Shown here: piece by piece, positions 666 through 34,944 of the stretch
Layout of the letters: each line of letters begins with the position of its first letter
Position numbering within the stretch: the stretch's first letter is position 1
IMG/VR virus record: IMGVR_UViG_3300027834_000005
Coordinates: 124,001 to 188,000 of that record
Strand: one strand, 5' to 3'
Length of the DNA: 64,000 nucleotides
Translations under genes and position numbers: made by a program
Notes under the pieces: model-generated
Seen by the model: the letters and a program-made list of their open reading frames with translations, nothing else
Database searches by the model: none
Told to the model about the DNA's origin: nothing

Positions 666-1298
666 TTACACTGCCTCCAAATAGATTCTTATAGTGTAGT
701 CAATCTCAAGAATACGATTGTTAGACTTTTGGATAGGATGAAAAATAACATGAGAAATCATCAACGCATCATTAGTGTTGGCCAATGTAGTTGATAGAGG
801 AATATTTGACTCACCTGTATACAAAGCTATCTCATCAAACACCGTGGCGTCATCTAAGTTATTTGCTCTATCAATCGGGTCCTGTAGACTACCAGTATCA
901 TTGAAATCTAAAGTACACGTGATTTTTACATCGGCATACTGCGCATTACTTTGGATAGGAATAACTGTGTTACCAGAATCGGCTCCGGTATTCGTTGAAC
1001 CATTCTCTCCTACTTCTTGGTGGTAAATTTCCGAGTATAATGATGAACTAGGATCTTTTATATTAGTCACATCCGGTTTTCTATATGTAATTTCTCCGTT
1101 TGCAGAGATAGACGTACCGCCATTACCAAATGCCATATATCTAATATGTCCGGTTCCTAGACCAGACAATGCATCAACTACGGACGCCGCGAGGTTACCA
1201 TAATGTATAGCGTTCATTTCGTCACGTATTACTTCTCTAGTAACTTTGTCACGAATGATGACATGCCCTTCAGCACGCATACCAATTCCTTCAATCAT
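666..1298 (-). CDS. Conserved baseplate/fibre-attachment protein
   Basis: Track ORF 666..1343; start moved to ATG 1298 (MIEGIG...), preceded by AGAGGA. Motifs MAFGNGGT, FDEIALY, SHVIFHPIQKS resemble tail-collar/fibre-anchor domains. Confidence 0.65.
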   Translation of the reverse strand: MIEGIGMRAEGHVIIRDKVTREVIRDEMNAIHYGNLAASVVDALSGLGTGHIRYMAFGNGGTSISANGEITYRKPDVTNIKDPSSSLYSEIYHQEVGENGSTNTGADSGNTVIPIQSNAQYADVKITCTLDFNDTGSLQDPIDRANNLDDATVFDEIALYTGESNIPLSTTLANTNDALMISHVIFHPIQKSNNRILEIDYTIRIYLEAV

Positions 1299-1299
1299 T

Positions 1300-1428
1300 T
1301 TATCCTCTCTTATCAAGCAAAGTCTTGCCTGATTCTTTGTCAATTATCTTGATGTGATCTTCTGCACTGAGGATGATGCCATCTCTGACACCATCATCTT
1401 TATCTTTTACTTCGTCTGTTTCTTTCAT
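1300..1428 (-). CDS. 42-aa microprotein (not in the ORF track)
   Basis: MKETDEVKDKDDGVRDGIILSAEDHIKIIDKESGKTLLDKRG*; sits directly behind a late promoter, fills the intergenic gap, and resembles the N-terminus of the next gene. Confidence 0.65.
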   Translation of the reverse strand: MKETDEVKDKDDGVRDGIILSAEDHIKIIDKESGKTLLDKRG

Positions 1429-1433
1429 ATCAC

Positions 1434-1441
1434 TATTTATC
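1434..1441 (-). promoter_or_regulatory. gp55-type late promoter GATAAATA
   Basis: TATTTATC on + strand; 5 nt before ATG 1428. Confidence 0.7.
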
Positions 1442-1460
1442 ACTAAATATTATATCCGTA

Positions 1461-4400
1461 TTAATTGTGCGGTGGCGTAGGTGTTACCGCCACTGGTAAG
1501 AATGGCACCTCTGAGTTAGAGTACACATACGTCCCTAATGGATAGTCTTCCAATAGGTTACCGTTAACAGATCCTTCAACATCTAATGTAGTACCGGCAG
1601 ACATTCTGGTCACGCCAGTCAATGTATTACCAACCTTGCCCGTGTAGATAACTCTCTCCGCGCCAACCCAAATAATACTTGGATTATCAACAGTCGCATC
1701 AACGAATAAAGATCCGTCTGTAACGTTCACATTAGAATCACCGTAAGCAAAGATACTAGAAAGTGTAGTTCTCGAAGTTAAGCTATGTAGCGTCTGGATG
1801 TTCTTCTCACTAACGAAGATTCTACAATCGTCGGAACTAACACCAGAACTTTTATCCGTGTAGCTAATAACTACCGCATCAGAAGATTTATACAAAGCCA
1901 TTTCGTCAGTTACGCCAGCATCAACATTGGAAGGTAAGAACGCTCCGCCGTCAATTGTTTGCTTACTGATATCATTACTGAATACATCGTCTCTCTTAGT
2001 AAAAGAAATCTTAACAATCTCATCGAGTAACGGAGCAACACTAAAGCTTATAACAACATCTCTTCCACTTTCGGCAACCGTGTAGTTAGTAACTATCACG
2101 CCATCGACGGTAACCTCACCAACGTAATCAGAGTTATGAACAGTAAAATCTGTATCCACACCATTAGCTGTTACGCTAACGTCATGTAATCTTTTATGCT
2201 GAATTACAATCTCATCATCAATCGCCGGAGCAGTAACAAAGGTAACGTCCGTAGTAGACACATTAAGTGTGTCTGAGTAGCCTGAGCTAACATACATAGG
2301 AACACCCGCGACTGTAACGCCGGTAACTTGAGATCTATACGGAATAGAATAAATCACTGTAGACGCATCACCTTGGTCAACTAAAGCCCTGAAGTATTTT
2401 TCATACACCACTTCTAAACTATCATTTACGCTTAACACAGAACTGAACGTTACTAATGTTGTTCCTTCTGCTACGTTCTGAGAAATAACATATACGTTTT
2501 CATCCGCTGCATCGCCATTTAAAATAACAGATTCGATCTTAACTAATCTATCAATAATAAATTCTGACGTTGCGCCATTAGGGTAGAACGTAGTATTGTA
2601 ATAATCACCGCTATCTACAGTAATAAAAGGCATTCTGATGTCAGAATTCCAACCTGTGCTATCCCAAGAAGTACTATCCCATCTAGCAGTATTTCTATAC
2701 GTGAAGTCTTGCGCGTCAATGACACTTCCTTGATAAGAACAATTGAACCATTCAGAATATGTATTCTTGAATGAATCCAAAGTTTGCTGTTCGCCCAAAG
2801 TAACTTTCACATTATCTTTCAACTCTGTATAGTACGAATATTTGATAGCGCCAGATCCGTCACCAGTCGAAGCTTTACCATTAATGGTAGCCAAACTGTT
2901 GTCATCCTGTAACTGCAAATATCTGTTAGCTGCACCACTATACACAATGAATCTACCTTTACGGATATCATTAGGTACGCCTTTACTACCTTCCGCAGTA
3001 GCACTGAAGTTCCATTTGAAAGAATCCCATGGCTGCGTAGTTCCGGCATTCCATCCTGCTTGTTCAGGCTGTAAGATAGGTGGTATTAAAGCCAAAGCCT
3101 CATCACCCCAATCATACGAACCCCAGAATCCAAAACCCCATCCTGATTTCAAGTTACCATGCGCATCAAGGAAAATATCATACTCGACTAATTTAAAATC
3201 TAATACGTTATCGTTACCGTCAATATCTGACAGCTGACCTCTATATCCATGGTAAGAAAGTCTCATTTCTTCCATATCAGTATGCGTAAATCTAATGTGA
3301 CCTTCAGGAATTAACTTGGCACCAACTGGCGGAGCAACAACGTCATCAACTATGGTAGCTTCAACCCAATGAGAGTACGTTGCATTTTCCTCAACAGTAT
3401 AATGCTGATCGATTAACAATGTGTCAGTATCCATCATTTCGTCACCTAAGTTTCCAGTGTACGTAGTGTCGTAGGATAATTTGCTAAGCTGCGGCATTGT
3501 TTTGAAAATGAACTTCTTAGTCACGCCATCGCCTATTGCATATTCCCTAACGAACACATAATCGCCTTCAGATAGAGGACTATTAAATGTTATGTCTAGT
3601 AATCCGGTTTCGCTCGACACGTACGTATAATCACCGGCATCAATCTCTACGTTATTTACGAACACGTCGAAATAGAACGGAGTAATACCGAATCTTATAG
3701 TAGTAGTTTCTGCCGCTGCAAACTTTTCTTGTCCGCCAGTCTCAACTTGCATTCTCTTATCCATGAATGAACATTGAACAGAGTCATATACTGGATTAAC
3801 ACGTATAGATCTTGGCACTTCAAACGGATCAAATACCGGATCTACTACTGGGATAGTTCTGCCTTCTTCGTCAGTGGTGTACGCTAATGAATCGAAATCA
3901 TTTGCTACCATCAATGAAGGGTCAATAAAATTATCATAACGAGTAGAGAACTCTCTAATCTTAGTTTGATAAGGCTTAACTTCAAGTAAGTAATCCAAGT
4001 ACCCATCTAAGTCGTCAGCGTCGTAAAACTTAGGCTGAGATAGAAGAGGCTTGTTTTCTTCAACCACATCGATATACGTAGTCTTGAAGAACCAATCTAC
4101 ATTAGTTTGCTCAAACGCCACGTACTTAACCATGGAAAAGAAGAATTCGACCTTCTCATCTCCATGATTACCAACTGACAAGTTAATGAAAACTTCTTCA
4201 CTAAGAAGATCAAGTATATATCTTACGTCGTCATCCAATTCTTTAGATATTCTTGACTCGTAAATATTATCGTTGATCATAATAGCAGTACTCTCACGTC
4301 TAACTAGGACAGTAGCAGTGTTGCTTTCTTGGTCATATAAGTAGTACGCAGAGTTATCTAATACGTATACTTGAACTATGTCGCCGTCTTCCAAGATCTT

Positions 4401-23835: not shown

Positions 23836-24843
23836 ATGTCTGACTTATTTAAGCGAGTAGCCATGGCCACCGATATTCATTTCGGTGGTAAAGGCAACAG
23901 CAAGTTATTTAACGAGGACATTATAGAATTCTTCGAGTGGTTCATTTCAGAAGCTAAGAGTAGAGACGCGGAAACGTGTATCATTCTTGGCGACTGGCAT
24001 GATTCCAGAAGTTCTATCAATGTCTTAACTCTCAATTACAGCCTCAAAGCCTTAACAATGCTTAACAACGCATTCGAGAAGGTATACATCATAACAGGTA
24101 ATCATGATCTTTTCTATAGGGAAAAGAGAGATGTTCATTCTCTAATAGTAGGTGATGGATTAGCCAATATTACAGTCATAGACACTCCTACCGAGATAGA
24201 TAATACACTATTTTTACCTTGGTTGGTAGAAGAAGAGTGGAAAGATTGCGTAAAGAATAAATCTAAATACATTTTTGGCCACTTAGAATTACCTGGATTC
24301 AAAATGAACGCTATGATCGAGATGCCAGATCATGGGGGCCTCAATGGCAAGCATTTTAAAAACCAAGATTACGTATTCACTGGTCACTTCCATAAACGAC
24401 AGTATAAAGACAACATCCATTATATCGGTAATCCTTTTGGTCACAACTACGGTGACGCAAGTGATTTCGAACGTGGTGCTTGCTTCTTAGATTGGGGCGG
24501 AAAACCAGAATATATAAATTATGTGGATGGTCCTAGATACCATAGTCTCATGCTTTCGGATCTTTTAAACTGTGTCGATGATATAGCTACTGAGAAGGCC
24601 TATATTAAGGTCACTGACGACATGAATATCAGCTACGAAGATACGATTTCGTACAGAGATATGTTCTCCAAGCTCAATGTTAGGGAATTTAAACTGACAC
24701 CGCAAAAGGTAGAGTACGATCACGAGTACGATCCGTCCGAAAAGTTCGAAACAGTGGACGGTTTAGTAGTAAATGAACTCACAAATATCGACAGTGACAA
24801 CTTCGACAATGCAATTCTAATAAAGATGTACGATGACTTATGA
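23836..24843 (+). CDS. gp47: Recombination endonuclease subunit (Mre11/SbcD-like)
   Basis: Metallophosphoesterase motifs DIH, GDWHD, GNHD, GHL, GHFH. Confidence 0.93.
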   Translation: MSDLFKRVAMATDIHFGGKGNSKLFNEDIIEFFEWFISEAKSRDAETCIILGDWHDSRSSINVLTLNYSLKALTMLNNAFEKVYIITGNHDLFYREKRDVHSLIVGDGLANITVIDTPTEIDNTLFLPWLVEEEWKDCVKNKSKYIFGHLELPGFKMNAMIEMPDHGGLNGKHFKNQDYVFTGHFHKRQYKDNIHYIGNPFGHNYGDASDFERGACFLDWGGKPEYINYVDGPRYHSLMLSDLLNCVDDIATEKAYIKVTDDMNISYEDTISYRDMFSKLNVREFKLTPQKVEYDHEYDPSEKFETVDGLVVNELTNIDSDNFDNAILIKMYDDL

Positions 24844-26588
24844 TTAAACTAAAAAATGTAACGATAAGAAACTTCATGTCGGTAGGTAATGTGTCCCAAG
24901 GCGTAGTTTTGGACAACGACCCTATCGTCTTAGTCCTAGGCGAGAACAGGGATCTAGGCGGAAACGGCAACAGAAACGGCGTAGGGAAGTCTACTATAGT
25001 GAATGCGATAACGTATGCACTATATGGAGGGGCCTTGACCAATATTAAGCTCAATAACCTAATAAACAAGACGAACGGCAAGAACATGTTCGTGACGATA
25101 GAGTTCACTAATGGTAACGACACGTACAAATTAGAACGTGGGCGTAAACCTGACGTGTTTAATATGTATATCAATGGATCTAACCCATACGATAATGACG
25201 CACAGGGCAATAATAGGCTCACGCAGAAGGACGTAGAAGCCATTTTGGGAATGAATAAAACATTATTCTCTAATATCGTCGCTTTAAATACGTTCAATGA
25301 GCCTTTTTTGTCCATGAAGGCAGCGCCACAACGAGAAATGATGGAGTTACTACTAGGAATGACGAAGCTTTCTGAGAAGGCTGTGTCGTTGAAGGAGAAT
25401 ATAAAGGATACTAAGGACGAAGTCAAGGAAGAAGAGTACAAAATAAAGTCCATTGATGACAGTAACTCAGTTATCCAACGAAGTAAAGACAGCCTTGCGT
25501 CTAAATCGAGTAAGTGGGAGACAACTAGAGAGCAGAACCTTGTAGATTTAACTAGTGCACTGTCCCTTTTATCCGAAATGAATATTGAAGATGAACTTGA
25601 GAATCATAGATTACTAGGCGTCAAGAAGGAAGCTGATACGTTATACCGAGAGGCATCCACTAACTTAAACATACTCAGTAAAGACTGTCAAGCGCTTATT
25701 AAAGAAAGAGACAGGGAACAACGCCATTTGGATAGCGCCACTGAAGGCGTATGTCATGCTTGTAATCAGGTATTACCGGATGACAATACTACTGAGACCA
25801 AGAAAACACACGCAGAGACCATAGAAGAGCTAAATAAGGCCATAGAAGAACTTGAGGCTGGCATAGCTATACTCACTGCCGACGTGGACAGTATGGCCAC
25901 TATAGAAGCTCCTACAGTTTTCTACTCTACGTACGAGGAAGCATATAACCACCAGATTCAAATACGCTTAATGGCTGATGAACTGGAAAAGGAAATGAAT
26001 TCCACTAATCCGTATGTCGATCAGATAACTGAACTGGACACATCTATAAAGAAAGCAGATTTCACTAGAATGGAACAGCTCGTAGCTATACGTGACCACC
26101 AAGATTTTCTTCTAAAATTATTGACGAATAAAGATAGCTTCATCAGAAAGAAAATTATAGACCAAAATCTATCATTCTTAAATGACAGGTTACGACATTA
26201 CTTAGAAACTATTGGACTGCCACACTCAGTTGTGTTCAATCCTAACTTAGATGTTTACATTACTGAGTATGGCCGTGACTTAGACTTCGATAATTTGAGT
26301 AGAGGAGAAAAGACTAGACTTATCCTTTCTCTATCATGGGCGTTCAGAGACGTATATGAATCCATGAATGGATCTATAAATTTATTATTCATCGATGAAC
26401 TATTAGACTCAGGCCTAGACGCGAGCGGAACCGAATCCACATTAGCTGCGCTTAAAGTTATGGCTCATGAGCAAAATAAAAATGTAATACTGATCTCCCA
26501 TAGGGAAGAGTTAGTAGGTAAAGTAGACAATATCATTACTGTATGTAAAGAAAATGGCTTTACCCGTATAGAGACATCGGAGTTGTAA
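24840..26588 (+). CDS. gp46: Recombination ATPase subunit (Rad50/SbcC-like)
   Basis: Walker A NGVGKST, zinc hook CHAC, signature LSRGE, Walker B LLFIDE, ISH motif. Confidence 0.95.
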   Translation: MIKLKNVTIRNFMSVGNVSQGVVLDNDPIVLVLGENRDLGGNGNRNGVGKSTIVNAITYALYGGALTNIKLNNLINKTNGKNMFVTIEFTNGNDTYKLERGRKPDVFNMYINGSNPYDNDAQGNNRLTQKDVEAILGMNKTLFSNIVALNTFNEPFLSMKAAPQREMMELLLGMTKLSEKAVSLKENIKDTKDEVKEEEYKIKSIDDSNSVIQRSKDSLASKSSKWETTREQNLVDLTSALSLLSEMNIEDELENHRLLGVKKEADTLYREASTNLNILSKDCQALIKERDREQRHLDSATEGVCHACNQVLPDDNTTETKKTHAETIEELNKAIEELEAGIAILTADVDSMATIEAPTVFYSTYEEAYNHQIQIRLMADELEKEMNSTNPYVDQITELDTSIKKADFTRMEQLVAIRDHQDFLLKLLTNKDSFIRKKIIDQNLSFLNDRLRHYLETIGLPHSVVFNPNLDVYITEYGRDLDFDNLSRGEKTRLILSLSWAFRDVYESMNGSINLLFIDELLDSGLDASGTESTLAALKVMAHEQNKNVILISHREELVGKVDNIITVCKENGFTRIETSEL

Positions 26589-26589
26589 T

Positions 26590-27147
26590 ATGGACCACAA
26601 GCCTTGGGAAGAAACTGACGTATGGAAATCTGAGAGCCAATATCTAATTTGGCTTCGAGGAAATCTAAGAAAAGCGTTATGGCAGCATTTTCCGCCTAGG
26701 ATTGCGTTCAAAAATGAAAGGTGCATTAACGTGACACCTAACATCAGAGAACAATATGGTCTCAGCAAGGCTTGTAAGTACGTAGGGGTGTGTGAGTTCT
26801 GTGAGGAATACCATCCCAAGTCTAAACTTGAAGTGGACCATATCGAAGGATGTGGTGCGCTTACATTAGAGAATAAATCTGAATGGATAGACCGTCTTAT
26901 ATGTTCCACATCGAATATGAGATTAGTCTGTAAGCCATGCCATAAAATTCACACTTACTCGGAACGAATGGGTATATCATTTGAGAGCGCTAAATTAGAG
27001 AAGAAAGTAATTGAATTTTCTAAAAAGCCCACGTCTATGCAGAATACATACCTCAAGAAAAGAAATCTACCCCACAATAATGCTAAAGTGAGGAAGGAAT
27101 CTTTTAGGAAGGTGCTGCTTGAAGACTCAAAGGCCGAAATCACTTAG
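26590..27147 (+). CDS. HNH endonuclease
   Basis: CEFC...EVDHI...LVCKPCHKIHT: Zn-binding CxxC pairs flanking a DH/H motif. Confidence 0.8.
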   Translation: MDHKPWEETDVWKSESQYLIWLRGNLRKALWQHFPPRIAFKNERCINVTPNIREQYGLSKACKYVGVCEFCEEYHPKSKLEVDHIEGCGALTLENKSEWIDRLICSTSNMRLVCKPCHKIHTYSERMGISFESAKLEKKVIEFSKKPTSMQNTYLKKRNLPHNNAKVRKESFRKVLLEDSKAEIT

Positions 27148-28737
27148 TTTGTAATTCCCATTTGGGTACTTATTGATGACATCTGCGATCTTCGTCTTAG
27201 TTCTATCCTGAAAACTACTACCATTGCGGTATGCAATCTTCTTAGCCGACATGAAATTCATCTCGGCTTTTGTCATGCCTGTACTTTTGTCGCTTTTCTT
27301 TCTAGGATTACCTGATGAGGTCCATTTCTTTCTTTTCTTTTTGAATACGCCTGTCTTACCTTCAACTACCGCACCCGTAAATATACCAGCTAACATGTCA
27401 GCAGTGGTTTTGTCAAGTACTATTACCTCTACTTCCCTTCCGACTTGCATAAAATCGTGAGAACGTATTGCAGTGCGACCTATAGTCTGATAAACACTCT
27501 CCAATTTGAAAGCGTCGTTAAGAACATTACCGTCTATATTACTTAATTTTTCCATAATACCCTTTACAGCAGTAGGGAATTGACATACGGTGAGTGCTGC
27601 CACTCTATGATATGACGTATATTGGTTCTGTCCGTGACTCTTTACGCTTATACTGGCTACATTATCCAAGTCATCTAGGGTCTTTACGTTACCATTTCCG
27701 TTGAAAGTCCAACTCTTATGGGTCGCATAAAGGAAATCTCCATCTGGCCAGTGTGCTGCTACTTGTGAAAAAAGTAGATCCCTAACATTCTGCTTACTTT
27801 CGACTGGCAGACCCTTCGGCTTATTATCGTGCAGCATACCTTTACTGGATTTATCATTATCATCCATTAAGTGGTATATCTTTAATAAAGATCCATGTGA
27901 GTGGGTATCCTTACTTATTAAGCTGGCCAGCGCAGTGTCTTCAACGAATTCTACGTCAAATACCTCTTTGAATAGATGGTACTGTAGGGTATTCAGGAAA
28001 TCAGCACACAGCACAGTGGTAGATTTGAACTTACTCGCTATACTGATAGGATCTACGATAGACACCGTTTGTAAATATGTATCGGTTACTTTCGCAAAAA
28101 CTGCACTGGTACGTTTCTGCATAACCGAAAGAATTCTGGAAAATTGTTTACAGTTAAGATTATCACGTTTATGATACATCTTAATGATATCTTCATACTC
28201 ATCCACATATTCTGGGTTGTCTTCTAAGCGATATATGTCCTCCACCACGTGATGGCAACTTATAAAATCAAGATACGTGTCGAATGTTTCTTCATCTGGC
28301 GTAAATCTTAGGAAGTCGAATACCGGCAACTGCTCATCTACGTACAGGGAACAGCCCTTAAGCATCGTTTTATTTGAGGTGAGGTCAGAGTCCAAATACA
28401 TCAGTAACGCCGCGTGGCTGATCACTAGAGCACCATAGGACACATCATCACATAGATCACGAATAGCTTCATCGACCTTATCTACCATTCCGCCTTGTTC
28501 AGCGGACACAGTATCCTCGTTACCTTTTTCTTCCAGAATAGCCATTGACTGCGAAGATAGTACTAACTTAGCCTTTCCGCCTTGCCTTCTTATGTCCGTG
28601 TGTGTCTGTAGTGCAAGTTTGGCAGTGGGAGCAGCATATATCGCGTTTATATGGGGTGATGTATTTATGTGAGATATAAATGCCGAGGTCTTTCCTGCCC
28701 CAACACTCGCGTTCACGTATAGGATCTGTGTTTTCAT
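27127..28737 (-). CDS. SF2-like helicase/ATPase, candidate origin-binding protein
   Basis: Walker A ASVGAGKT, motif Ia YAAPT, Walker B YVDE, motif VI YQTIGRTAIR; Lys-rich C-terminal tail. Confidence 0.7.
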   Translation of the reverse strand: MKTQILYVNASVGAGKTSAFISHINTSPHINAIYAAPTAKLALQTHTDIRRQGGKAKLVLSSQSMAILEEKGNEDTVSAEQGGMVDKVDEAIRDLCDDVSYGALVISHAALLMYLDSDLTSNKTMLKGCSLYVDEQLPVFDFLRFTPDEETFDTYLDFISCHHVVEDIYRLEDNPEYVDEYEDIIKMYHKRDNLNCKQFSRILSVMQKRTSAVFAKVTDTYLQTVSIVDPISIASKFKSTTVLCADFLNTLQYHLFKEVFDVEFVEDTALASLISKDTHSHGSLLKIYHLMDDNDKSSKGMLHDNKPKGLPVESKQNVRDLLFSQVAAHWPDGDFLYATHKSWTFNGNGNVKTLDDLDNVASISVKSHGQNQYTSYHRVAALTVCQFPTAVKGIMEKLSNIDGNVLNDAFKLESVYQTIGRTAIRSHDFMQVGREVEVIVLDKTTADMLAGIFTGAVVEGKTGVFKKKRKKWTSSGNPRKKSDKSTGMTKAEMNFMSAKKIAYRNGSSFQDRTKTKIADVINKYPNGNYKLSDFGL

Positions 28738-29641: not shown

Positions 29642-30169
29642 TTACTTCCACGTCTTACCGGAATATACATCCAGTAATTTATTCTCCCAATCTTTGCCAT
29701 ATAGGTCTAAGACGTCTTGATCCACATGTAAAGTTATAGACACTACATACTTGCCTATATTCTGAAACCTCACGTAACCAGTAAATTTATTGAAGTTTAA
29801 GTATATGAAAGAGTTGATTTTAAGAAGTATATCACCAATTTCACCTTCTATCAAGTTAGTGCCTTCACGATGGGACATGTATTTTATAGTCCCTTTCTGT
29901 AAAACAACGTCAGTGTAAATTTCATCACCTGTCATTTCTTGTGTGTAAATTTTACCAACCATAGTCTTGCATTGGTTTATTGATAAGTCATAAACGACGC
30001 CATCACCATAGTTGAAGGCATCGATTTTATGTTGATTTTTTCCATTATAATAAAGGGACCAGTTAATCTTCTGGGCGTCTAGTATCTTGGTAGTTTCGCA
30101 AGCCCACTTAATATTCTTAAGTCTGCTTGCTTCTTCTACTGTTCTAGGTATGTATACTGTGTCTTGCAT
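29642..30169 (-). CDS. Hypothetical protein (about 175 aa)
   Basis: Track ORF 29642..30190; ATG 30169 has AAGGA upstream and avoids overlap with the gp51-like gene. Confidence 0.65.
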   Translation of the reverse strand: MQDTVYIPRTVEEASRLKNIKWACETTKILDAQKINWSLYYNGKNQHKIDAFNYGDGVVYDLSINQCKTMVGKIYTQEMTGDEIYTDVVLQKGTIKYMSHREGTNLIEGEIGDILLKINSFIYLNFNKFTGYVRFQNIGKYVVSITLHVDQDVLDLYGKDWENKLLDVYSGKTWK

Positions 30170-30180
30170 AATTGTGTCCT

Positions 30181-30414
30181 TTATAACCATTCTTTGCCGG
30201 TCATATTCTGTATCTTGTGGTTTAGCTTCTTAAGCATCCGGTTTCTTTCTAGATGCGACATACGTCTAGCTTCAGTGTAGGTTACCCCACCATCCATGTA
30301 CACGCACATATCTGTAATCTGGTCTTCAATCAACTCAGAACTTTTTTCAAGGGACTTAATCGTTTCCGATATACGTTCGTCGTCTAGACTTATTAAGACC
30401 CCGTAGAAAAATTT
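30181..30414 (-). CDS. gp51: gp51-like baseplate hub assembly chaperone domain, probably expressed as a -1 frameshift extension of gp26
   Basis: ETIKSLEKSSELIEDQITDMCVYMDGGVTYTEARRMSHLERNRM resembles small gp51-like proteins; the frame is -1 relative to gp26 and there is no in-frame ATG for about 33 codons after the slippery site. Confidence 0.6.
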   Translation of the reverse strand, partial: KFFYGVLISLDDERISETIKSLEKSSELIEDQITDMCVYMDGGVTYTEARRMSHLERNRMLKKLNHKIQNMTGKEWL

Positions 30415-31247
30415 ACAGGATTTGTCTCTATCTGTGAACTCCATGTGTTTTCGCATTCATCACACTTAATAGTTACGTTGGTGTCTATGCCTATACCGTT
30501 GATTTTTTTCACTTCAGTTTCAATCGACTTCGCATCTCTTATTTCAATGTTCTTGAGAAGATCAATGATGTTTGCCCTATTTGACTCGTCTGCGTACAGA
30601 TCAATGTTAGCCTCGTCATCATGTAGACGGTATATGCTACCCGCTATAAGCTCGGCATTAAGAGCTGTCATTTTCTTTATGGACTTGTTGAGGACTTTAA
30701 GTACCTCTTCAGTACCGGCATTGGCGTTAATAAGTTGCTTCTGAACTTTTTCTTGCTCGAAAGCCAACTTCATCATCTTAATTTTGTCATTATATGTGAA
30801 AGGGCGCACAGATGCATTCAGTCCGCTACTTAACTTAACGATATATTCATCATCTAGGCTCTGGCAGTTAGCCAGCATTTCTTCTAGGTTAATAGCATAC
30901 GTGTTCTCGTGTGTACATTTACCGCACACTGAGGTGAAGTCAGTTTCTTTACCGTATGAAGCGACCCTTATTGCTGTTAATAGAGCATCAACATCATTGG
31001 TTAATAGCGACAGTGGCTTTTTCAAACCATCTACGCAGCTCTTAAGTACAGTGGTTACCGCCTCTCCATTAAGTAGAGCATCAGGGTTTTTAAGGATGAT
31101 CTCGTCATCACTGGTCATGGCACGAATGCCTACCTCTCCATTGTCCGTGAAGTCTATAACTTGGTCTGTGTAATATGTTGTACCGGAAGGAAGTGGCACA
31201 TATGTACTCACCTTGCGGTAATAATCGTGGAATATGTCAGAATTCAT
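30393..31247 (-). CDS. gp26: Baseplate hub assembly protein gp26-like
   Basis: YVPLPSGT...VGIRAMTSDDEIILKNPDALLNG...DVDALLTAIRVASYG...CxxC...CxxC: T4 gp26 family pattern. Confidence 0.85.
   Translation of the reverse strand: MNSDIFHDYYRKVSTYVPLPSGTTYYTDQVIDFTDNGEVGIRAMTSDDEIILKNPDALLNGEAVTTVLKSCVDGLKKPLSLLTNDVDALLTAIRVASYGKETDFTSVCGKCTHENTYAINLEEMLANCQSLDDEYIVKLSSGLNASVRPFTYNDKIKMMKLAFEQEKVQKQLINANAGTEEVLKVLNKSIKKMTALNAELIAGSIYRLHDDEANIDLYADESNRANIIDLLKNIEIRDAKSIETEVKKINGIGIDTNVTIKCDECENTWSSQIETNPVNFSTGS
30408..30414 (-). other. Candidate -1 ribosomal frameshift slippery heptamer A_AAT_TTT
   Basis: In the gp26 frame GTA AAT TTT TCT; fits X_XXY_YYZ, four sense codons before the gp26 stop. 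Confidence 0.6.
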
Positions 31248-31271
31248 TTTTTTAAGGTTCCTATGTTCTGT

Positions 31272-31279
31272 GATAAATA
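31272..31279 (+). promoter_or_regulatory. Late promoter GATAAATA for the tape-measure/portal operon
   Basis: TGATAAATAGT in the divergent gap. Confidence 0.75.
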
Positions 31280-31292
31280 GTGTTCATGCAAG

Positions 31293-31300
31293 TATTTATG
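31293..31300 (-). promoter_or_regulatory. Late promoter variant CATAAATA for gp26
   Basis: TATTTATG on + strand, facing the promoter at 31272. Confidence 0.55.
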
Positions 31301-31326
31301 CATACGAATTTAATACGGATAAAAAT

Positions 31327-33237
31327 ATGGATGACATTAATATATTAAGCGTCAACGGAAAAGATCCAGAGGATATGCCATGGGCAAGGGAAATGACCCT
31401 TCAGGCTATCGCTAAGGATATTTCTAAAATGGCAAAGACCTCGCAGCGCGACTCTAGCTCTATGTTGGATTCCATACTTGAAGGTAATGAAGAGGGTGAA
31501 GCTCAGCGCGAAAGACTTAATAGAGAAACCAAGTCTGGGAATGACGATGCTAGGCAAGACAGTAGAATAAGAAATAAATTACAGCAAAGTACCGTAGATA
31601 AACTTGAACATATGGGCGTTAAGTTTGATGGTATGGGTGATAATTTACTTGGTGGTATGGGCGGCGGAGTAATGGGCGTCGTTGCAAATGCGGTTGGCGT
31701 TGCATTTGACACAGTTATTGAATCTATGGTCGCGGGAGTATCTTCCTTTGCCGATGCATATAAAGATGGTCTTGCCGTAGGCGAAGACGCATACGAAGGG
31801 TTCGTGAATAGTACTATAGGTTTACAGATCAGTATGTCCAGTTTGTCAGAGATCAGTCAAGAATATACCAATATGATGAATCAGGTTGGCATCCCTACGT
31901 TCCTTAGCTTCAATGATGCAATGCGTAAAGGTGAAGAAAATAGCGTGAGCTTCATGTCTAAGTTTGGTTTAACAAATCGTGAGGCTGCAGATTATATGGC
32001 TTCGTATTTAGACCAACATCGTCTTTTAACCGGCATGGAAAATCTAGAATCTATGCGTAATATGAAAAAGATGAAAGAGTCATATGCCAATACGGACAGA
32101 TTTGCCAAAGCGTTAGGTGTGTCAACGGAACATCTAATGAACCAATTAAAGGCTCAAGCGGAAGACGTCAATGTAAGAAAGGCGATGCTGAACGTTGATA
32201 AAGATTCTAAAGAGTCCATGAATAAACTTCTTGCTATCGTGCCCGACAGTATGAAGAACATGGTTCTAGATATGCTACAGAATCCAGCATTAGCTGAAGG
32301 TACTAATTCATTCAAAGATTTACTTAAGGGTGGCGCGTCAGGCGTTGCGTACGCATTAAAAGATATCGTAATGGCGGCGAATGATGGTTCATTAGCTATG
32401 GGTGATATAGAAGGAATCATGCAAAACTTAAATGGTGAGTTTAAGAAGGTGGATCTAGACAGCCTTAATGCTGCTGGTACAGCCGGTCACAGTTTCGCAG
32501 ATACAACCAAAATAGCAACGGTAGAATTCAAAGAACGTATGGATAATATCAATGCGACCCTTAAAGCCGGTACGAACATCTATGCAGAAAGTAGCGTTAC
32601 GTTAGGTAATTTCATTGAGACTACTGAAGGCGCTATACAGAAGTTATTCGCTGATCTAGCAACTCCTGAAATGTTAGAAATGTTCACGTACGCGTTAGGA
32701 TTAGCTACTGAAATGTTCACAGACACAATGAAGAGCTTCGCAACTATAGACCAAAAAGATATTAAAGAGTTCTTCAACACTACATTACCTGGATTTTTCG
32801 TGACAGTAAAAGAGATGATGGTAGGTATCAGTGAAGGATGGATGAATTTCAAATCATCATGGCTTGGTGAGTCGATGGGGTTTGGCGGGACAGTTACTAA
32901 AGAAGAAAAGGCGGAGTTGGTTGCGCAGAAAGAAAATCTAAACCACACGAAGAATATATTTAACGCCCAACAGACCGTTCTTAAACAGATAGAAGCCGGT
33001 CCTGCAGAGAAAGCTAAAGCTGCTGCGGAAAATGAACAAAAAATAAAAGCACAGCAAGAAAAAGTTAATCAAGAGAACAGAGGACTGACGCCAGAACAAG
33101 ATAAGGCCTCATTCACCGCGAGCGAAAAGCAACTAGAAGTTCTCATGGCTATTAAGAATACTTTAGAACTACAAGAAAAGATCTTGAAAAAAACACGCAC
33201 AGACGCAAAAAGTAAATCCATCACAGGTGGAAAATAA
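31327..33237 (+). CDS. Tape-measure-like protein (T4 gp29 analogue)
   Basis: Helical, Ala/Met/Gly-rich with FAKALGVS; the track start at 31234 overlaps gp26 and lies upstream of the promoter, so ATG 31327 (MDDINIL) is preferred. Confidence 0.65.
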   Translation: MDDINILSVNGKDPEDMPWAREMTLQAIAKDISKMAKTSQRDSSSMLDSILEGNEEGEAQRERLNRETKSGNDDARQDSRIRNKLQQSTVDKLEHMGVKFDGMGDNLLGGMGGGVMGVVANAVGVAFDTVIESMVAGVSSFADAYKDGLAVGEDAYEGFVNSTIGLQISMSSLSEISQEYTNMMNQVGIPTFLSFNDAMRKGEENSVSFMSKFGLTNREAADYMASYLDQHRLLTGMENLESMRNMKKMKESYANTDRFAKALGVSTEHLMNQLKAQAEDVNVRKAMLNVDKDSKESMNKLLAIVPDSMKNMVLDMLQNPALAEGTNSFKDLLKGGASGVAYALKDIVMAANDGSLAMGDIEGIMQNLNGEFKKVDLDSLNAAGTAGHSFADTTKIATVEFKERMDNINATLKAGTNIYAESSVTLGNFIETTEGAIQKLFADLATPEMLEMFTYALGLATEMFTDTMKSFATIDQKDIKEFFNTTLPGFFVTVKEMMVGISEGWMNFKSSWLGESMGFGGTVTKEEKAELVAQKENLNHTKNIFNAQQTVLKQIEAGPAEKAKAAAENEQKIKAQQEKVNQENRGLTPEQDKASFTASEKQLEVLMAIKNTLELQEKILKKTRTDAKSKSITGGK

Positions 33238-33246
33238 GGAAGTATA

Positions 33247-34944
33247 ATGAGTTGGAAGAAATATTTTAAACCAGTAAACAGCGTAATGCCTGCCCAACAT
33301 AAATCCGTGGGCACTCCGCAATCTGCAGACAAGTTTAATAGTTGGTTGCCAGAAGTTTATAATGGACCGCCAGATAGACTACAACGCTATGCCCAGTATG
33401 AACAGATGGACATGGATCATGAAGTTTGCGCAGCAATGGATACATTGGCGGAATTTTGCACTCAGAAAAGTGAGAGTACGGGCACGCCATTCGACGTAGA
33501 ATATCTTACTGATCCGAGTGAATCGGAGAGTAAAGTAATAGATAGTGCATTAAGAAGATGGTGCTCTATTAATGATTTCAATAAAAGAATGTTCAGAATG
33601 GTTAGGTCAACATTAATGTATGGAGATCAATTCTTCATTCGTGACCCAGAAACTTTTAAGTTGTATTGGGTTGATCCTAACAATATAGAAAAAGTTGTTG
33701 TTAATGAGAGCGCAGGTAAGAGTATCGAGACCTACTTTATTAAGGATCTTGATCTTAATCACCAGTCTTTAGTTGCTTCATCTATGACTAACTCCAAAAA
33801 AGGCGGTTACGCTAATAGATCTCACGGATTTGGTAACTTAGCTAATATGCAAGCCCCAGCACAAGGAGCCACATCGTCATACTTTACATCGGGTGGCACA
33901 TCTGACTCTGACGTAGCCTTTCCGGTAGCCGGAGAGAACGTAATTCATATCAGTCTTACTGAAGGTATGGATTCTGCTTGGCCTTTCGGCGTGAGTGAGC
34001 TTGAGCCAGTCTTTAAAATATATAAGCAGAAGTCGATGCTTGAAGATGCGATGTTGATTTACCGCATCCACAGAGCACCTGAGAGACGTGTATTCTCCAT
34101 TGACGTTGGTGATATGCCACCTACACAGGCACATCAATATCTTGAGCGTGTTAAGTATGAAGTGCAACAGAAGCGTATGCCTAATAGAACAGGTGGCGGC
34201 GAGAACATCACGGACTCAGCTTACGATCCCCTATCTACCTTAGAAGATTACTACTTCGCTGTTACGGCTGACGGTAGAGGCTCTAAAGTAGATGTATTAC
34301 CAGGTGGTGATAACTTGGGCGAAATAAACGACATGCTTTATTTTAACAATAAAATGTTTAGAGCATTAGGAATCCCTAGTTCATATATTCCTACTGGACC
34401 AGACGACGGCAGCGCTACATCTTCTGACGGTAAAGTGGGCACAGCTTTCATACAAGAATTTAGATTCACTGAAAGATGTAAAAGGCATCAACGTCAAATG
34501 GTTGATGCTATGGATAGAGAATTCAAACTGTTCATGAAAGAAAATGGCATCACGGTTGATAACGGAATGTTTAATCTTCAATTTTCAGAACCGCAGAATT
34601 TCTCTGAGTACAGACAGATTGAATTAGACTCTGCTCGTATAGCTGTGTTCTCTCAAGTACAAGAGATTCCGTTTGTGGCTAAGCAATACGCATTAAGACG
34701 TTACATGGGCTGGACAGAAAAAGATATCTTCGAGAATGAGAAATACTGGAAGATGGAAAATGAAGAAGAATTTACCGACGAAGATCAAGGCGTTGGCTTA
34801 GGTCAAGTAGGCATGAGTGGATCTGACTTTGAATCAGACGAGTTCGGTGGTGAAGAAATGATGGGCGACGAAGAGATGAGCGATGAAGGTGATTTCGACG
34901 CTGACTCAATGGGCGCTGAAGACGTAGAGAATTTTGGGAACTAA
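33247..34944 (+). CDS. gp20: Portal vertex protein
   Basis: YEQMDMDHEV, LEDAMLIYRIHRAPERRVFSIDVG, LEDYYFA...GRGSKVDVLPGG, ALGIPSS; acidic tail. Confidence 0.96.
   Translation: MSWKKYFKPVNSVMPAQHKSVGTPQSADKFNSWLPEVYNGPPDRLQRYAQYEQMDMDHEVCAAMDTLAEFCTQKSESTGTPFDVEYLTDPSESESKVIDSALRRWCSINDFNKRMFRMVRSTLMYGDQFFIRDPETFKLYWVDPNNIEKVVVNESAGKSIETYFIKDLDLNHQSLVASSMTNSKKGGYANRSHGFGNLANMQAPAQGATSSYFTSGGTSDSDVAFPVAGENVIHISLTEGMDSAWPFGVSELEPVFKIYKQKSMLEDAMLIYRIHRAPERRVFSIDVGDMPPTQAHQYLERVKYEVQQKRMPNRTGGGENITDSAYDPLSTLEDYYFAVTADGRGSKVDVLPGGDNLGEINDMLYFNNKMFRALGIPSSYIPTGPDDGSATSSDGKVGTAFIQEFRFTERCKRHQRQMVDAMDREFKLFMKENGITVDNGMFNLQFSEPQNFSEYRQIELDSARIAVFSQVQEIPFVAKQYALRRYMGWTEKDIFENEKYWKMENEEEFTDEDQGVGLGQVGMSGSDFESDEFGGEEMMGDEEMSDEGDFDADSMGAEDVENFGN

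Follow-up and report, generated by a model that had tools for sequence, protein, structure and literature searches.

The giant T4-like marine phage represented by IMG/VR record IMGVR_UViG_3300027834_000005 most likely makes two tail-baseplate assembly proteins, corresponding to those that phage T4 encodes as two separate genes (26 and 51), from one gene by a programmed -1 ribosomal frameshift, although the evidence is comparative and no protein-level data yet exist. We analyzed a 64,000-nucleotide stretch of this record (positions 124,001 to 188,000; hereafter the window), in which the gp26-like gene ends ...NPVNFSTGS* over GTA AAT TTT TCT. An earlier note had read this junction as a slippery heptamer, A_AAT_TTT, fusing a gp26-like and a gp51-like domain into products of 284 and 355 aa, and our reading of the sequence confirms the heptamer, the open -1 frame and the predicted product lengths. 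The -1 frame reads AAA TTT TTC TAC and onwards, so that a slip after F280 adds 75 residues to give the predicted fusion (…NPVNF-FYGVLISLDDER…; predicted junction peptide …NPVNFFYGVLISLDDER). We infer that most ribosomes terminate at the frame-0 stop and make the equivalent of T4 gp26, whereas a minority slip back one nucleotide and make a long product whose added helical domain corresponds to the C-terminal extension of T4 gp51, the hub-assembly 'catalyst'. The efficiency of the shift, and the action of both products in hub and tape-measure assembly as in T4, are likewise inferred. The coordinates of the features are collected in Table 1.

Table 1. Features of the gp26/gp51-like locus, in positions of the window.
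Feature	Position	Strand	Description
gp26-like baseplate-hub assembly gene	30393..31247	-	Frame 0; 284-aa short product; two CxxC pairs (C108/C111 and C262/C265)
Putative slippery heptamer	30408..30414	-	A_AAT_TTT; frame-0 codons AAT (N279) and TTT (F280)
-1 frame ORF	30181..30411	-	gp51-C-terminal-like helical domain (FFYGVLISLDDER…KEWL); stop TAA at 30183..30181; 75 of its codons follow F280 in the predicted fusion
Frame-0 stop codon	30393..30395	-	TAA, four codons after the heptamer; terminates the short product
Two -1-frame ATGs	30444..30456	-	At 30456 and 30444; used by gene callers as starts for an 87-91 aa ORF; probably not real starts
Divergent neighbour	31234..33237	+	667 aa; putative tape-measure-like virion protein
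T4-type portal gene	33247..34944		Follows the divergent neighbour

Profile searches assigned the upstream ORF to the T4_baseplate family (PF12322; 72.9 bits against a cut-off of 24.5, residues 38-268) and to phrog_150 (E 4e-27). The four cysteines of its CxxC pairs and F280 are invariant in our alignment, and although frame 0 of the window has F-S in place of the C-terminal F-F, the F-F is restored in the predicted fusion. It is the only PF12322 gene found in the 347-kb genome, of which about 6% is missing. The source metagenome contig is identical over this stretch, and about 90%-identical relatives in two other metagenomes show no indel here. The window also aligns without gaps to relatives in both frames, the change from T6 to T5 plus C being a substitution, so a homopolymer sequencing error is not the explanation. 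A DNA-level search of the phage collection with the locus found nothing, a 9-sequence gp26 alignment contained no stretch conserved enough to retrieve further loci, and scans with the XacN1 and Vibrio proteins found no new loci.

Conservation of a slippery heptamer at gp26 ends across relatives was the test proposed in the earlier note, and it is passed, although the conserved form is T_TTT_TTC/T and not the A_AAT_TTT of the window. All 26 relatives with a single PF12322 gene (jumbo phages PA5oct, 121Q, Atu_ph07, XacN1 and others; cyanophages; KVP40) carry xxT TTT TTY in the gp26 frame at the same C-terminal Phe-Phe, followed by a homologue of the downstream domain in the -1 frame, whereas none of 6 short-form genes from two-gene phages has the run. 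Across the 27 one-gene loci, including the window, the codon before Phe-Phe always ends in T (8 different codons, 7 amino acids) and the first Phe codon is always TTT, while the second codon is TTC in 23, TTT in 3 and TCT in the window alone. Part of the Phe-Phe conservation is explained by the gp26 protein itself, since T4 gp26 also ends …EFFELL. The next codon is selected in the -1 frame, as it is Arg through all four CGN codons in 22 of 27 loci while the overlapping frame-0 codon encodes E, A, V, G, I, R or T. Coding periodicity switches at the same run, with column entropy lowest at frame-0 position 2 upstream (1.22) and lowest at -1-frame position 2 immediately downstream (1.11 in the first 30 nt). 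The frame-0 tail after Phe-Phe is 1 to 11 codons long in relatives and is unconserved.

The window is the odd member of this group and has the weakest signal in the clade. It is the only one of the 27 loci without T_TTT_TTY, its heptamer lies one codon upstream of the conserved position, and slippage on A_AAT_TTT needs tRNA-Asn to re-pair on AAA. We found neither an upstream SD-like element (-2.9 kcal/mol, at background level) nor a significant downstream hairpin (z 0.3 and -0.5, from two analyses) in the window, and RNAalifold over 19 loci detected no RNA structure conserved across the clade. In contrast, the cyanophage relatives P-SSM2 and S-PM2 show a dnaX-like three-part layout, with GGAGGG 9 nt upstream of the heptamer (-9.8 kcal/mol) and a hairpin starting 4-5 nt downstream (z -5.6 and -5.7).

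Naturally uninterrupted proteins also support the predicted fusion. A profile search with the -1 domain found 633 relatives, including in-frame C-terminal copies, and about 21 cluster representatives of 319-351 aa carry the domain at the extreme C-terminus. All 10 of these that were tested pass the PF12322 cut-off, and their junctions are colinear with the predicted fusion (for example …FDPASFFRRKLLSL…). An AF2 model of one is predicted to fold as a unit (pLDDT 89, pTM 0.82), and a fold search with a natural long form found only baseplate-hub proteins in BFVD and nothing significant in PDB or AFDB Swiss-Prot.

The 'gp51-like' label given in the earlier note also holds for the -1 domain, although its continuity with the PF12322 domain depends on the unproven frameshift. 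T4 gp26 (208 aa) and gp51 (249 aa) are encoded by two divergent adjacent genes, are both PF12322 and are both listed as hub assembly chaperones, gp51 being required but absent from the particle (PMC3004832). Whereas gp26 stops just after …FFELL, gp51 consists of a PF12322 domain (E 4e-52) plus a C-terminal helical extension (F-K-L-L-x-N-P-D-E-I … M-I-P-x-E-R), which aligns colinearly with the -1 domain starting from the Phe-Phe. A profile of the jumbo-phage -1 domain matches the gp51 and mini-gp51 C-termini (hhalign probability 78%, E 1.8e-5, 35 columns). This homology is statistically moderate, as a single-sequence comparison gave a probability of 2%, family profiles gave 24-78%, and HMM scores against individual gp51s were weak (2-9 bits), although always at the same place. 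Single-sequence comparisons of the -1 domain with T4 gp51 and gp28 were uninformative, profiles of the long forms against single T4 sequences aligned only the N-terminal domain, and only phrog_18291, of unknown function, matches. Sequence identity to T4 is low, and the -1 domain is about 14 residues longer in the middle. T4 has two PF12322 genes and no slippery run (GAG TTC TTT GAG), whereas this phage, PA5oct, 121Q, Atu_ph07, XacN1, KVP40, S-PM2 and P-SSM2 have one gene each.

The 'mini-gp51' ORFs of cyanomyoviruses and KVP40, described as about 20% of the length of T4 gp51 and lacking the first ~200 aa (Sullivan et al., 2010; PMC3037559), are the same element; each lies directly after the single gp26 gene in the -1 frame, with the gp26 Phe-Phe encoded as xxT TTT TTC, and is homologous to the -1 domain of the window. 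They differ in having an ATG 4-5 codons after the run and a domain that is shorter, like that of T4. The comparison with lambda gpG/gpGT and the P2 gpE/E+E' type of tail assembly chaperone (Xu, Hendrix & Duda, 2004), which the earlier note had drawn as a 'G/GT-style' switch, is an analogy of mechanism and not of family membership. As in those systems, two proteins would share an N-terminus, the longer being made by a -1 slip near the 3' end of the first ORF, the role would be non-structural or catalytic tail assembly, and a low-abundance long form is plausible. However, the Pfam and PHROG searches returned no tail-assembly-chaperone families, the extension is only 75 aa, and in T4 the family acts in baseplate-hub assembly. 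The gene lies next to the putative tape-measure gene but is divergent from it rather than immediately upstream on the same strand, a layout also seen in PA5oct, 121Q, Serratia phage BF and Phosso. The tape-measure assignment is itself a lead and not a proof, resting only on a language-model feature search (ESM-Atlas hits mostly to tape-measure families, score 0.93). Syntenic homologues in PA5oct, 121Q and Serratia phage BF are annotated as virion structural proteins, that of PA5oct having been found by MS. The adjoining portal matches PF07230 (E 2e-101).

The principal alternative, which we consider unlikely, is that the downstream ORF is an ordinary separate gene whose small product acts in trans with gp26. 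In the window it would be translated from one of the two -1-frame ATGs as an 87-91 aa protein overlapping the gp26 3' end by 52-64 nt, and in relatives it would start by coupling at ATGA or TAATG, or at TTG. Indeed, Phosso and Atu_ph07 have an ATGA overlap, 121Q and Serratia phage BF have a TAATG-type junction, and in Phosso, Atu_ph07, 121Q, cyanophages and KVP40 an ATG lies 3-5 codons after the run, often overlapping the gp26 stop, so a separately initiated small protein could exist there as well. All database annotations treat the ORF as a separate small gene, and cyanophage gp51 has been described as a short stand-alone gene (PMC3037559). Against this, the 75-codon -1 ORF of PA5oct has no ATG, GTG or TTG and is unannotated, and in eight or more lineages, including SCTP-2, Serratia phage BF, XacN1, Xoo-sp13, RAS14, XaC1 and Munch, the first start lies 14-21 codons inside the conserved domain. 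Gene callers give the ORF lengths from 41 to 98 aa. The residues before any start (FFR…) are under -1-frame selection and align with in-frame residues of T4 gp51 and of the natural fusions, and the T-ending codon before Phe-Phe in 27 of 27 loci has no explanation under this model. In cyanophages the GGAGGG lies 24 nt from the ATG, which is too far for initiation. In the window the two ATGs lie 15 and 11 codons before the Phe-Phe (downstream of the slip site the first ATG is 34 codons in), are by-products of the conserved Cys and Trp codons (GAA TGC and ACA TGG) and have weak Shine-Dalgarno pairing (-3.1 and -2.1 kcal/mol, against a median of -5.5 for long-ORF starts and -2.4 for internal ATGs). 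Upstream initiation is also not a conserved feature, as the equivalent ATGs in Phosso run into a -1-frame stop and in 17 of 23 relatives the -1 frame is closed within 5 codons upstream of the T-run.

A less likely possibility is that the same fusion protein is made by transcriptional slippage, with RNA polymerase adding one U in the T-run in a fraction of mRNAs. The conserved element is a homopolymeric T6-T7 run, an in-frame T7 version exists at the DNA level in a metagenomic relative (AGT TTT TTT CGT), showing that a +1 T yields a functional reading, and the product would be identical, so the comparative evidence does not separate the two mechanisms. However, T6 is probably short for efficient slippage by bacterial RNA polymerase, which would usually be expected on runs of 8-9 or more, and the window has only T5. 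The strict codon register, in which the run starts at codon position 3 in 27 of 27 loci, matters for ribosomal tandem slippage but not for polymerase slippage, and the SD-like element and hairpin of the cyanophage relatives act on ribosomes. That the locus is instead a decayed remnant or an assembly artefact, as the loss of T_TTT_TTY and the lack of a detectable stimulatory element might suggest, is very unlikely, since the -1 ORF is intact (76 codons) and aligns end to end with homologues, substitutions within it in the about 90%-identical relatives fall on third codon positions of the -1 frame, and A_AAT_TTT still fits the X_XXY_YYZ pattern and gives the same Phe-Phe junction.

Our data suggest that the arrangement in the window is a local variant of a -1 frameshift site, T_TTT_TTC, conserved at the C-terminal Phe-Phe of the single gp26/51 gene in Rak2-, PA5oct-, Atu_ph07- and XacN1-like jumbo phages, cyanomyoviruses and KVP40, whereas T4-like phages proper, and at least one metagenomic lineage, carry one short and one long paralog without the slippery run. 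We found no published description of it in a literature search that did not reach most subscription journals. In a tree of PF12322 domains, frameshift-type genes lie on both sides of the deepest split, while T4-like gp26 and gp51 form one nested clade (support 97/97). It is somewhat more likely than not, though far from established, that the frameshift is the ancestral state of the whole T4-like superfamily, including the jumbo Rak2/PA5oct/Atu_ph07-like phages, cyanomyoviruses and schizoT4 phages. Under this reading genes 26 and 51 of T4 are a frameshift that was 'resolved' by duplication, and the 'mini-gp51' genes annotated in hundreds of cyanophage and vibriophage genomes would be the shifted-frame exon of gp26 and not genes of their own.

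Conserved -1 frameshifts in tail-assembly chaperone genes are a hallmark of long-tailed phages, yet T4-type phages were the exception, and the gp26/gp51 pair would, under the same reading, be the missing T4-type counterpart of the G/GT switch. The finding predicts a fixed short-to-long ratio set by frameshift efficiency, would correct the annotation of a core gene in several large phage groups and would offer a natural example of a frameshift replaced by gene duplication at least twice. It would link why T4 has two paralogous hub chaperones, one with a C-terminal extension and both functionally obscure, why the gp51 of cyanophages and KVP40 lacks about 200 residues, and why jumbo-phage genomes carry an unannotatable small ORF, in PA5oct with no start codon at all, after the baseplate hub gene.

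The gp26-like ORF of the window encodes 284 aa and is a member of PF12322 T4_baseplate (72.9 bits against a cut-off of 24.5) and of phrog_150 'baseplate hub'. It ends CCT GTA AAT TTT TCT ACG GGG TCT TAA, which reads …NPVNFSTGS*, whereas the -1 frame reads AAA TTT TTC TAC GGG GTC … (KFFYGVLISLDDER…) and stays open for a further 75 codons, so that a slip on A_AAT_TTT would give a product of 280 + 75 = 355 aa, as the earlier note had stated. The -1 frame is also open 15 codons upstream and holds two ATGs. The divergent neighbour (667 aa) resembles tape-measure families only in a language-model feature search, and is followed by a T4-type portal gene. The listed ATG of this neighbour overlaps the gp26-like start by 14 nt, but its ESM Atlas record begins at residue 13, so the true start may be further in, which would leave a short divergent promoter region, as between T4 genes 26 and 51. 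The next ORF downstream of the -1 frame has no Pfam or PHROG match, and the second of its two candidate ATGs has the better Shine-Dalgarno (SD) pairing (-5.3 against -1.7 kcal/mol) and is the likelier start; relatives have unrelated genes at this position. In relatives the gp26 neighbourhood holds gp46/gp47-type recombination nuclease genes and endonuclease VII. The window belongs to a 347-kb virus record from a marine metagenome.

Coordinates of the features discussed, in the window and in loci of related phages and contigs
Sequence	Position	Strand	Feature
Window	30393..31247	-	gp26-like ORF (284 aa)
Window	30414..30408	-	Putative slippery heptamer A_AAT_TTT
Window	30183..30181	-	TAA stop of the -1 frame
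Window	30456 and 30444	-	ATGs in the -1 frame
Window	30380-30455		76-nt stretch around the slip site with no difference listed in relatives of about 90% identity
Window	30391-30423		Region in which several contigs break; the only stretch matched by a 6.5-kb contig of a more distant phage
Window	29642-30190	-	Next ORF downstream (182 aa from ATG 30190; likelier start ATG 30169)
Window	31234	+	Listed ATG start of the tape-measure-like ORF (667 aa)
Window	31247	-	Start of the gp26-like ORF
Window	31234-31270		Region of the two divergent starts
Window	24840-28737		Upstream: a 582-aa ORF with an N-terminal P-loop and a long coiled-coil-like middle, a 185-aa Cys/His-rich ORF and a 536-aa P-loop ORF on the other strand
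L004 (PA5oct)	3353-3575		-1 ORF missed by the public annotation
L002 (Atu_ph07)	4019-4246		-1 ORF truncated in the public annotation
L032 (ENA metagenome contig)	2380-2470		T7 run with both domains in one frame
L033 (Logan contig)	955-2909		Two tandem PF12322 genes
L046 (P-SSM2)	2150-2260		dnaX-like three-part signal at the gp26 3' end
L047 (S-PM2)	2150-2260		dnaX-like three-part signal at the gp26 3' end

Searches by tblastn with the small ORF and with the gp26-like protein found jumbo myoviruses, including PA5oct (37% identity), Phosso, Atu_ph07, SCTP-2, XacN1, Serratia phage BF, 121Q and Rak2-like phages. We retrieved 13 annotated loci and 10 IMG/VR loci, and in every one a homologous ORF of 72-82 codons follows the gp26-like gene in the -1 frame. 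The gp26 C-terminal Phe-Phe is written xxT TTT TTC (or TTT in three cases), which is the slippery heptamer T_TTT_TTY in the correct register. After the run the frame-0 tail is 1 to 11 codons long and unconserved, whereas the -1 frame immediately reads a conserved FFR-x-[RK]-L-L-x-S-x-P-E-E-[IV]….

Several lines of evidence suggest that the -1 frame is read from the run and not from a start codon. The PA5oct ORF has no ATG, GTG or TTG at all, and because it has no start codon the public annotation leaves a 223-nt gap; in SCTP-2, Serratia phage BF, XacN1, Xoo-sp13, RAS14, XaC1 and the Munch group the first start lies 14-21 codons inside the conserved domain. In 17 of 23 loci a -1-frame stop lies within 5 codons upstream of the run, so no upstream start can serve it, and in three loci this stop lies directly against the run (TAA TTT TTT). 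Gene callers disagree widely, giving products of 41 to 98 aa, and in Atu_ph07 only the last 40 codons are annotated (gp687). Column entropy has the coding signature of frame 0 upstream of the run and that of frame -1 from the first 30 nt downstream. Across 27 one-gene loci the codon before Phe-Phe always ends in T (8 codons, 7 amino acids), the first Phe codon is always TTT, and the next -1 codon is Arg through all four CGN codons in 22 loci, while the overlapping frame-0 codon changes amino acid (E, A, V, G, I, R, T).

Natural fusions of the two domains also exist. A profile of the -1 domain searched against 1.8 billion cluster representatives found 633 relatives, and about 21 of the top 150 are proteins of 319-351 aa with the domain at the extreme C-terminus. 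All ten that were tested pass the PF12322 cut-off and 21 of 21 match phrog_150. Their junctions (…SSSFRSRILTKTTEEV…, …DQFFNQLVNVSDGEIE…, …FDPASFFRRKLLSL…) are colinear with the predicted fusion, and one of these proteins is predicted to fold with high confidence as a single unit (pLDDT 89, pTM 0.82), its last 80 residues forming four helices. The GC-rich relative on L032 (the source of …FDPASFFRRKLLSL…) has the run as T7 (AGT TTT TTT CGT), which places gp26 and the C-terminal domain in one frame; this may be a genuine DNA-level fusion by a +1 T or a homopolymer assembly error, and its called gene also lacks the N-terminal ~90 residues of the family. L033 carries a 312-aa short form without the C-terminal domain followed by a 319-aa long form with it in frame and no T-run, an arrangement that parallels T4 genes 26 and 51 independently.

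T4 gp51 (249 aa) is itself a full PF12322 match (E 4e-52), so it is a paralog of gp26 (208 aa), and it has a C-terminal extension that gp26 lacks; T4-like gp26 proteins stop a few residues after …F-[FL]-[KE]-x-L. The gp51 extension aligns with the -1 domain, with F-K-L-L-x-N-P-D-E-I against FFR-x-x-L-L-x-S-x-P-E-E-I, then a 14-residue gap, then N-Y-S-L…M-I-P-x-E-R against N-x-D-Y…N-M-P-x-x-D-R. The statistical support is moderate: hhalign gave E 8e-4 against a gp51 family alignment, and E 1.8e-5 with a probability of 78% once cyanophage and KVP40 sequences were added, while HMM hits are weak but fall at the same place in 6 of 7 gp51 sequences. A precomputed annotation lists a second Pfam family, PF28602, on T4-like gp51 proteins, which is absent from the Pfam copy that we searched and from the jumbo-phage -1 ORFs; it probably models the gp51 C-terminal extension and would be the natural family to extend to the -1 domain. 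The PF12322 copy number is 2 in T4, but 1 in this genome, PA5oct, 121Q, Atu_ph07, XacN1, KVP40, S-PM2 and P-SSM2, and none of five T4-like gp26 genes, nor the short paralog of L033, has the T-run.

It has been noted that the gp51 of cyanophages and marine vibriophages is only about 20% as long as T4 gp51 and lacks the first ~200 residues (Sullivan et al., 2010; PMC3037559). In P-SSM2, S-PM2 and KVP40 this 'mini-gp51' lies directly after the single gp26 gene in the -1 frame, and the gp26 end is written AGT/TCT/GAT TTT TTC. Read from the Phe-Phe, the residues before its ATG (FFRIS…) align with in-frame residues of T4 gp51 (VFKLL…). The two cyanophages also have GGAGGG 9 nt upstream of T_TTT_TTC (-9.8 kcal/mol), the strongest anti-SD pairing in the gene, and a hairpin that starts 4-5 nt downstream (z -5.6 and -5.7), which is the dnaX-type layout; the GGAGGG is 24 nt from the ATG, which is too far to serve initiation. 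KVP40 has AAGAGG (-5.8 kcal/mol).

The window is sister to PA5oct (99/94) but is the only locus without T_TTT_TTY. The aligned codons are AAT TTT TCT, so T6 has become T5+C by substitution and not by an indel, and the usable heptamer, A_AAT_TTT, lies one codon upstream and gives the same Phe-Phe junction. No SD-like element or significant hairpin flanks it. The two upstream ATGs do not look like real starts, as they have weak SD pairing (-3.1 and -2.1 kcal/mol, against a median of -5.5 for long-ORF starts and -2.4 for internal ATGs) and arise from the conserved gp26 codons GAA TGC and ACA TGG, and in Phosso the equivalent ATGs run into a -1-frame stop before the run. In relatives of about 90% identity from two sediment metagenomes, all six substitutions listed inside the -1 ORF are at its third codon positions and no indel is reported. 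Around the slip site no difference is listed, although the flanking gp26 sequence differs at about 11%; a conserved island here is probable but not certain.

Of the alternatives to ribosomal slippage, independent initiation of the small ORF cannot be excluded in lineages with a nearby ATG, including the window, but it cannot explain the absent or late start codons, the stops upstream of the run, the disagreement among gene callers, the switch in coding signature at the run or the constraint on the codons that flank it. Transcriptional slippage would yield the same protein and is disfavoured by the short run and the strict codon register, although it remains untested. Decay of the locus or an artefact is unlikely. 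The earlier note had likened the arrangement to a G/GT-style switch, and it would work like lambda G/GT, with a shared N-terminus, a -1 slip and a role in tail assembly, and it has a position next to the putative tape-measure gene. However, it does not fit that family in gene position and strand or in homology, and by family it is gp26/gp51. No description of a frameshift in these genes was found in the part of the literature that could be searched, which is incomplete.

In an unrooted tree of PF12322 domains, drawn with a midpoint root, T4-like gp26 and gp51 form one clade (97/97) nested beside KVP40 and the cyanophages, which are of the frameshift type, while the in-frame long forms and the L033 short paralog nest among the jumbo frameshift types. 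The frameshift state therefore lies on both sides of the deepest split, and the two-gene state looks derived at least twice, but several branches are long and the root is unknown, so this is a parsimony argument only. Taken as a whole, the sequence observation made in the earlier note is confirmed, and its interpretation as a -1 frameshift is supported by strong comparative evidence, without protein-level proof; our confidence in the frameshift is high for the clade and somewhat lower, though still good, for this particular window. The best explanation is ribosomal -1 slippage, which would produce a major 284-aa gp26-equivalent and a minor 355-aa gp51-equivalent, and a low-abundance long form fits the catalytic, non-virion role of gp51 in T4 (PMC3004832).
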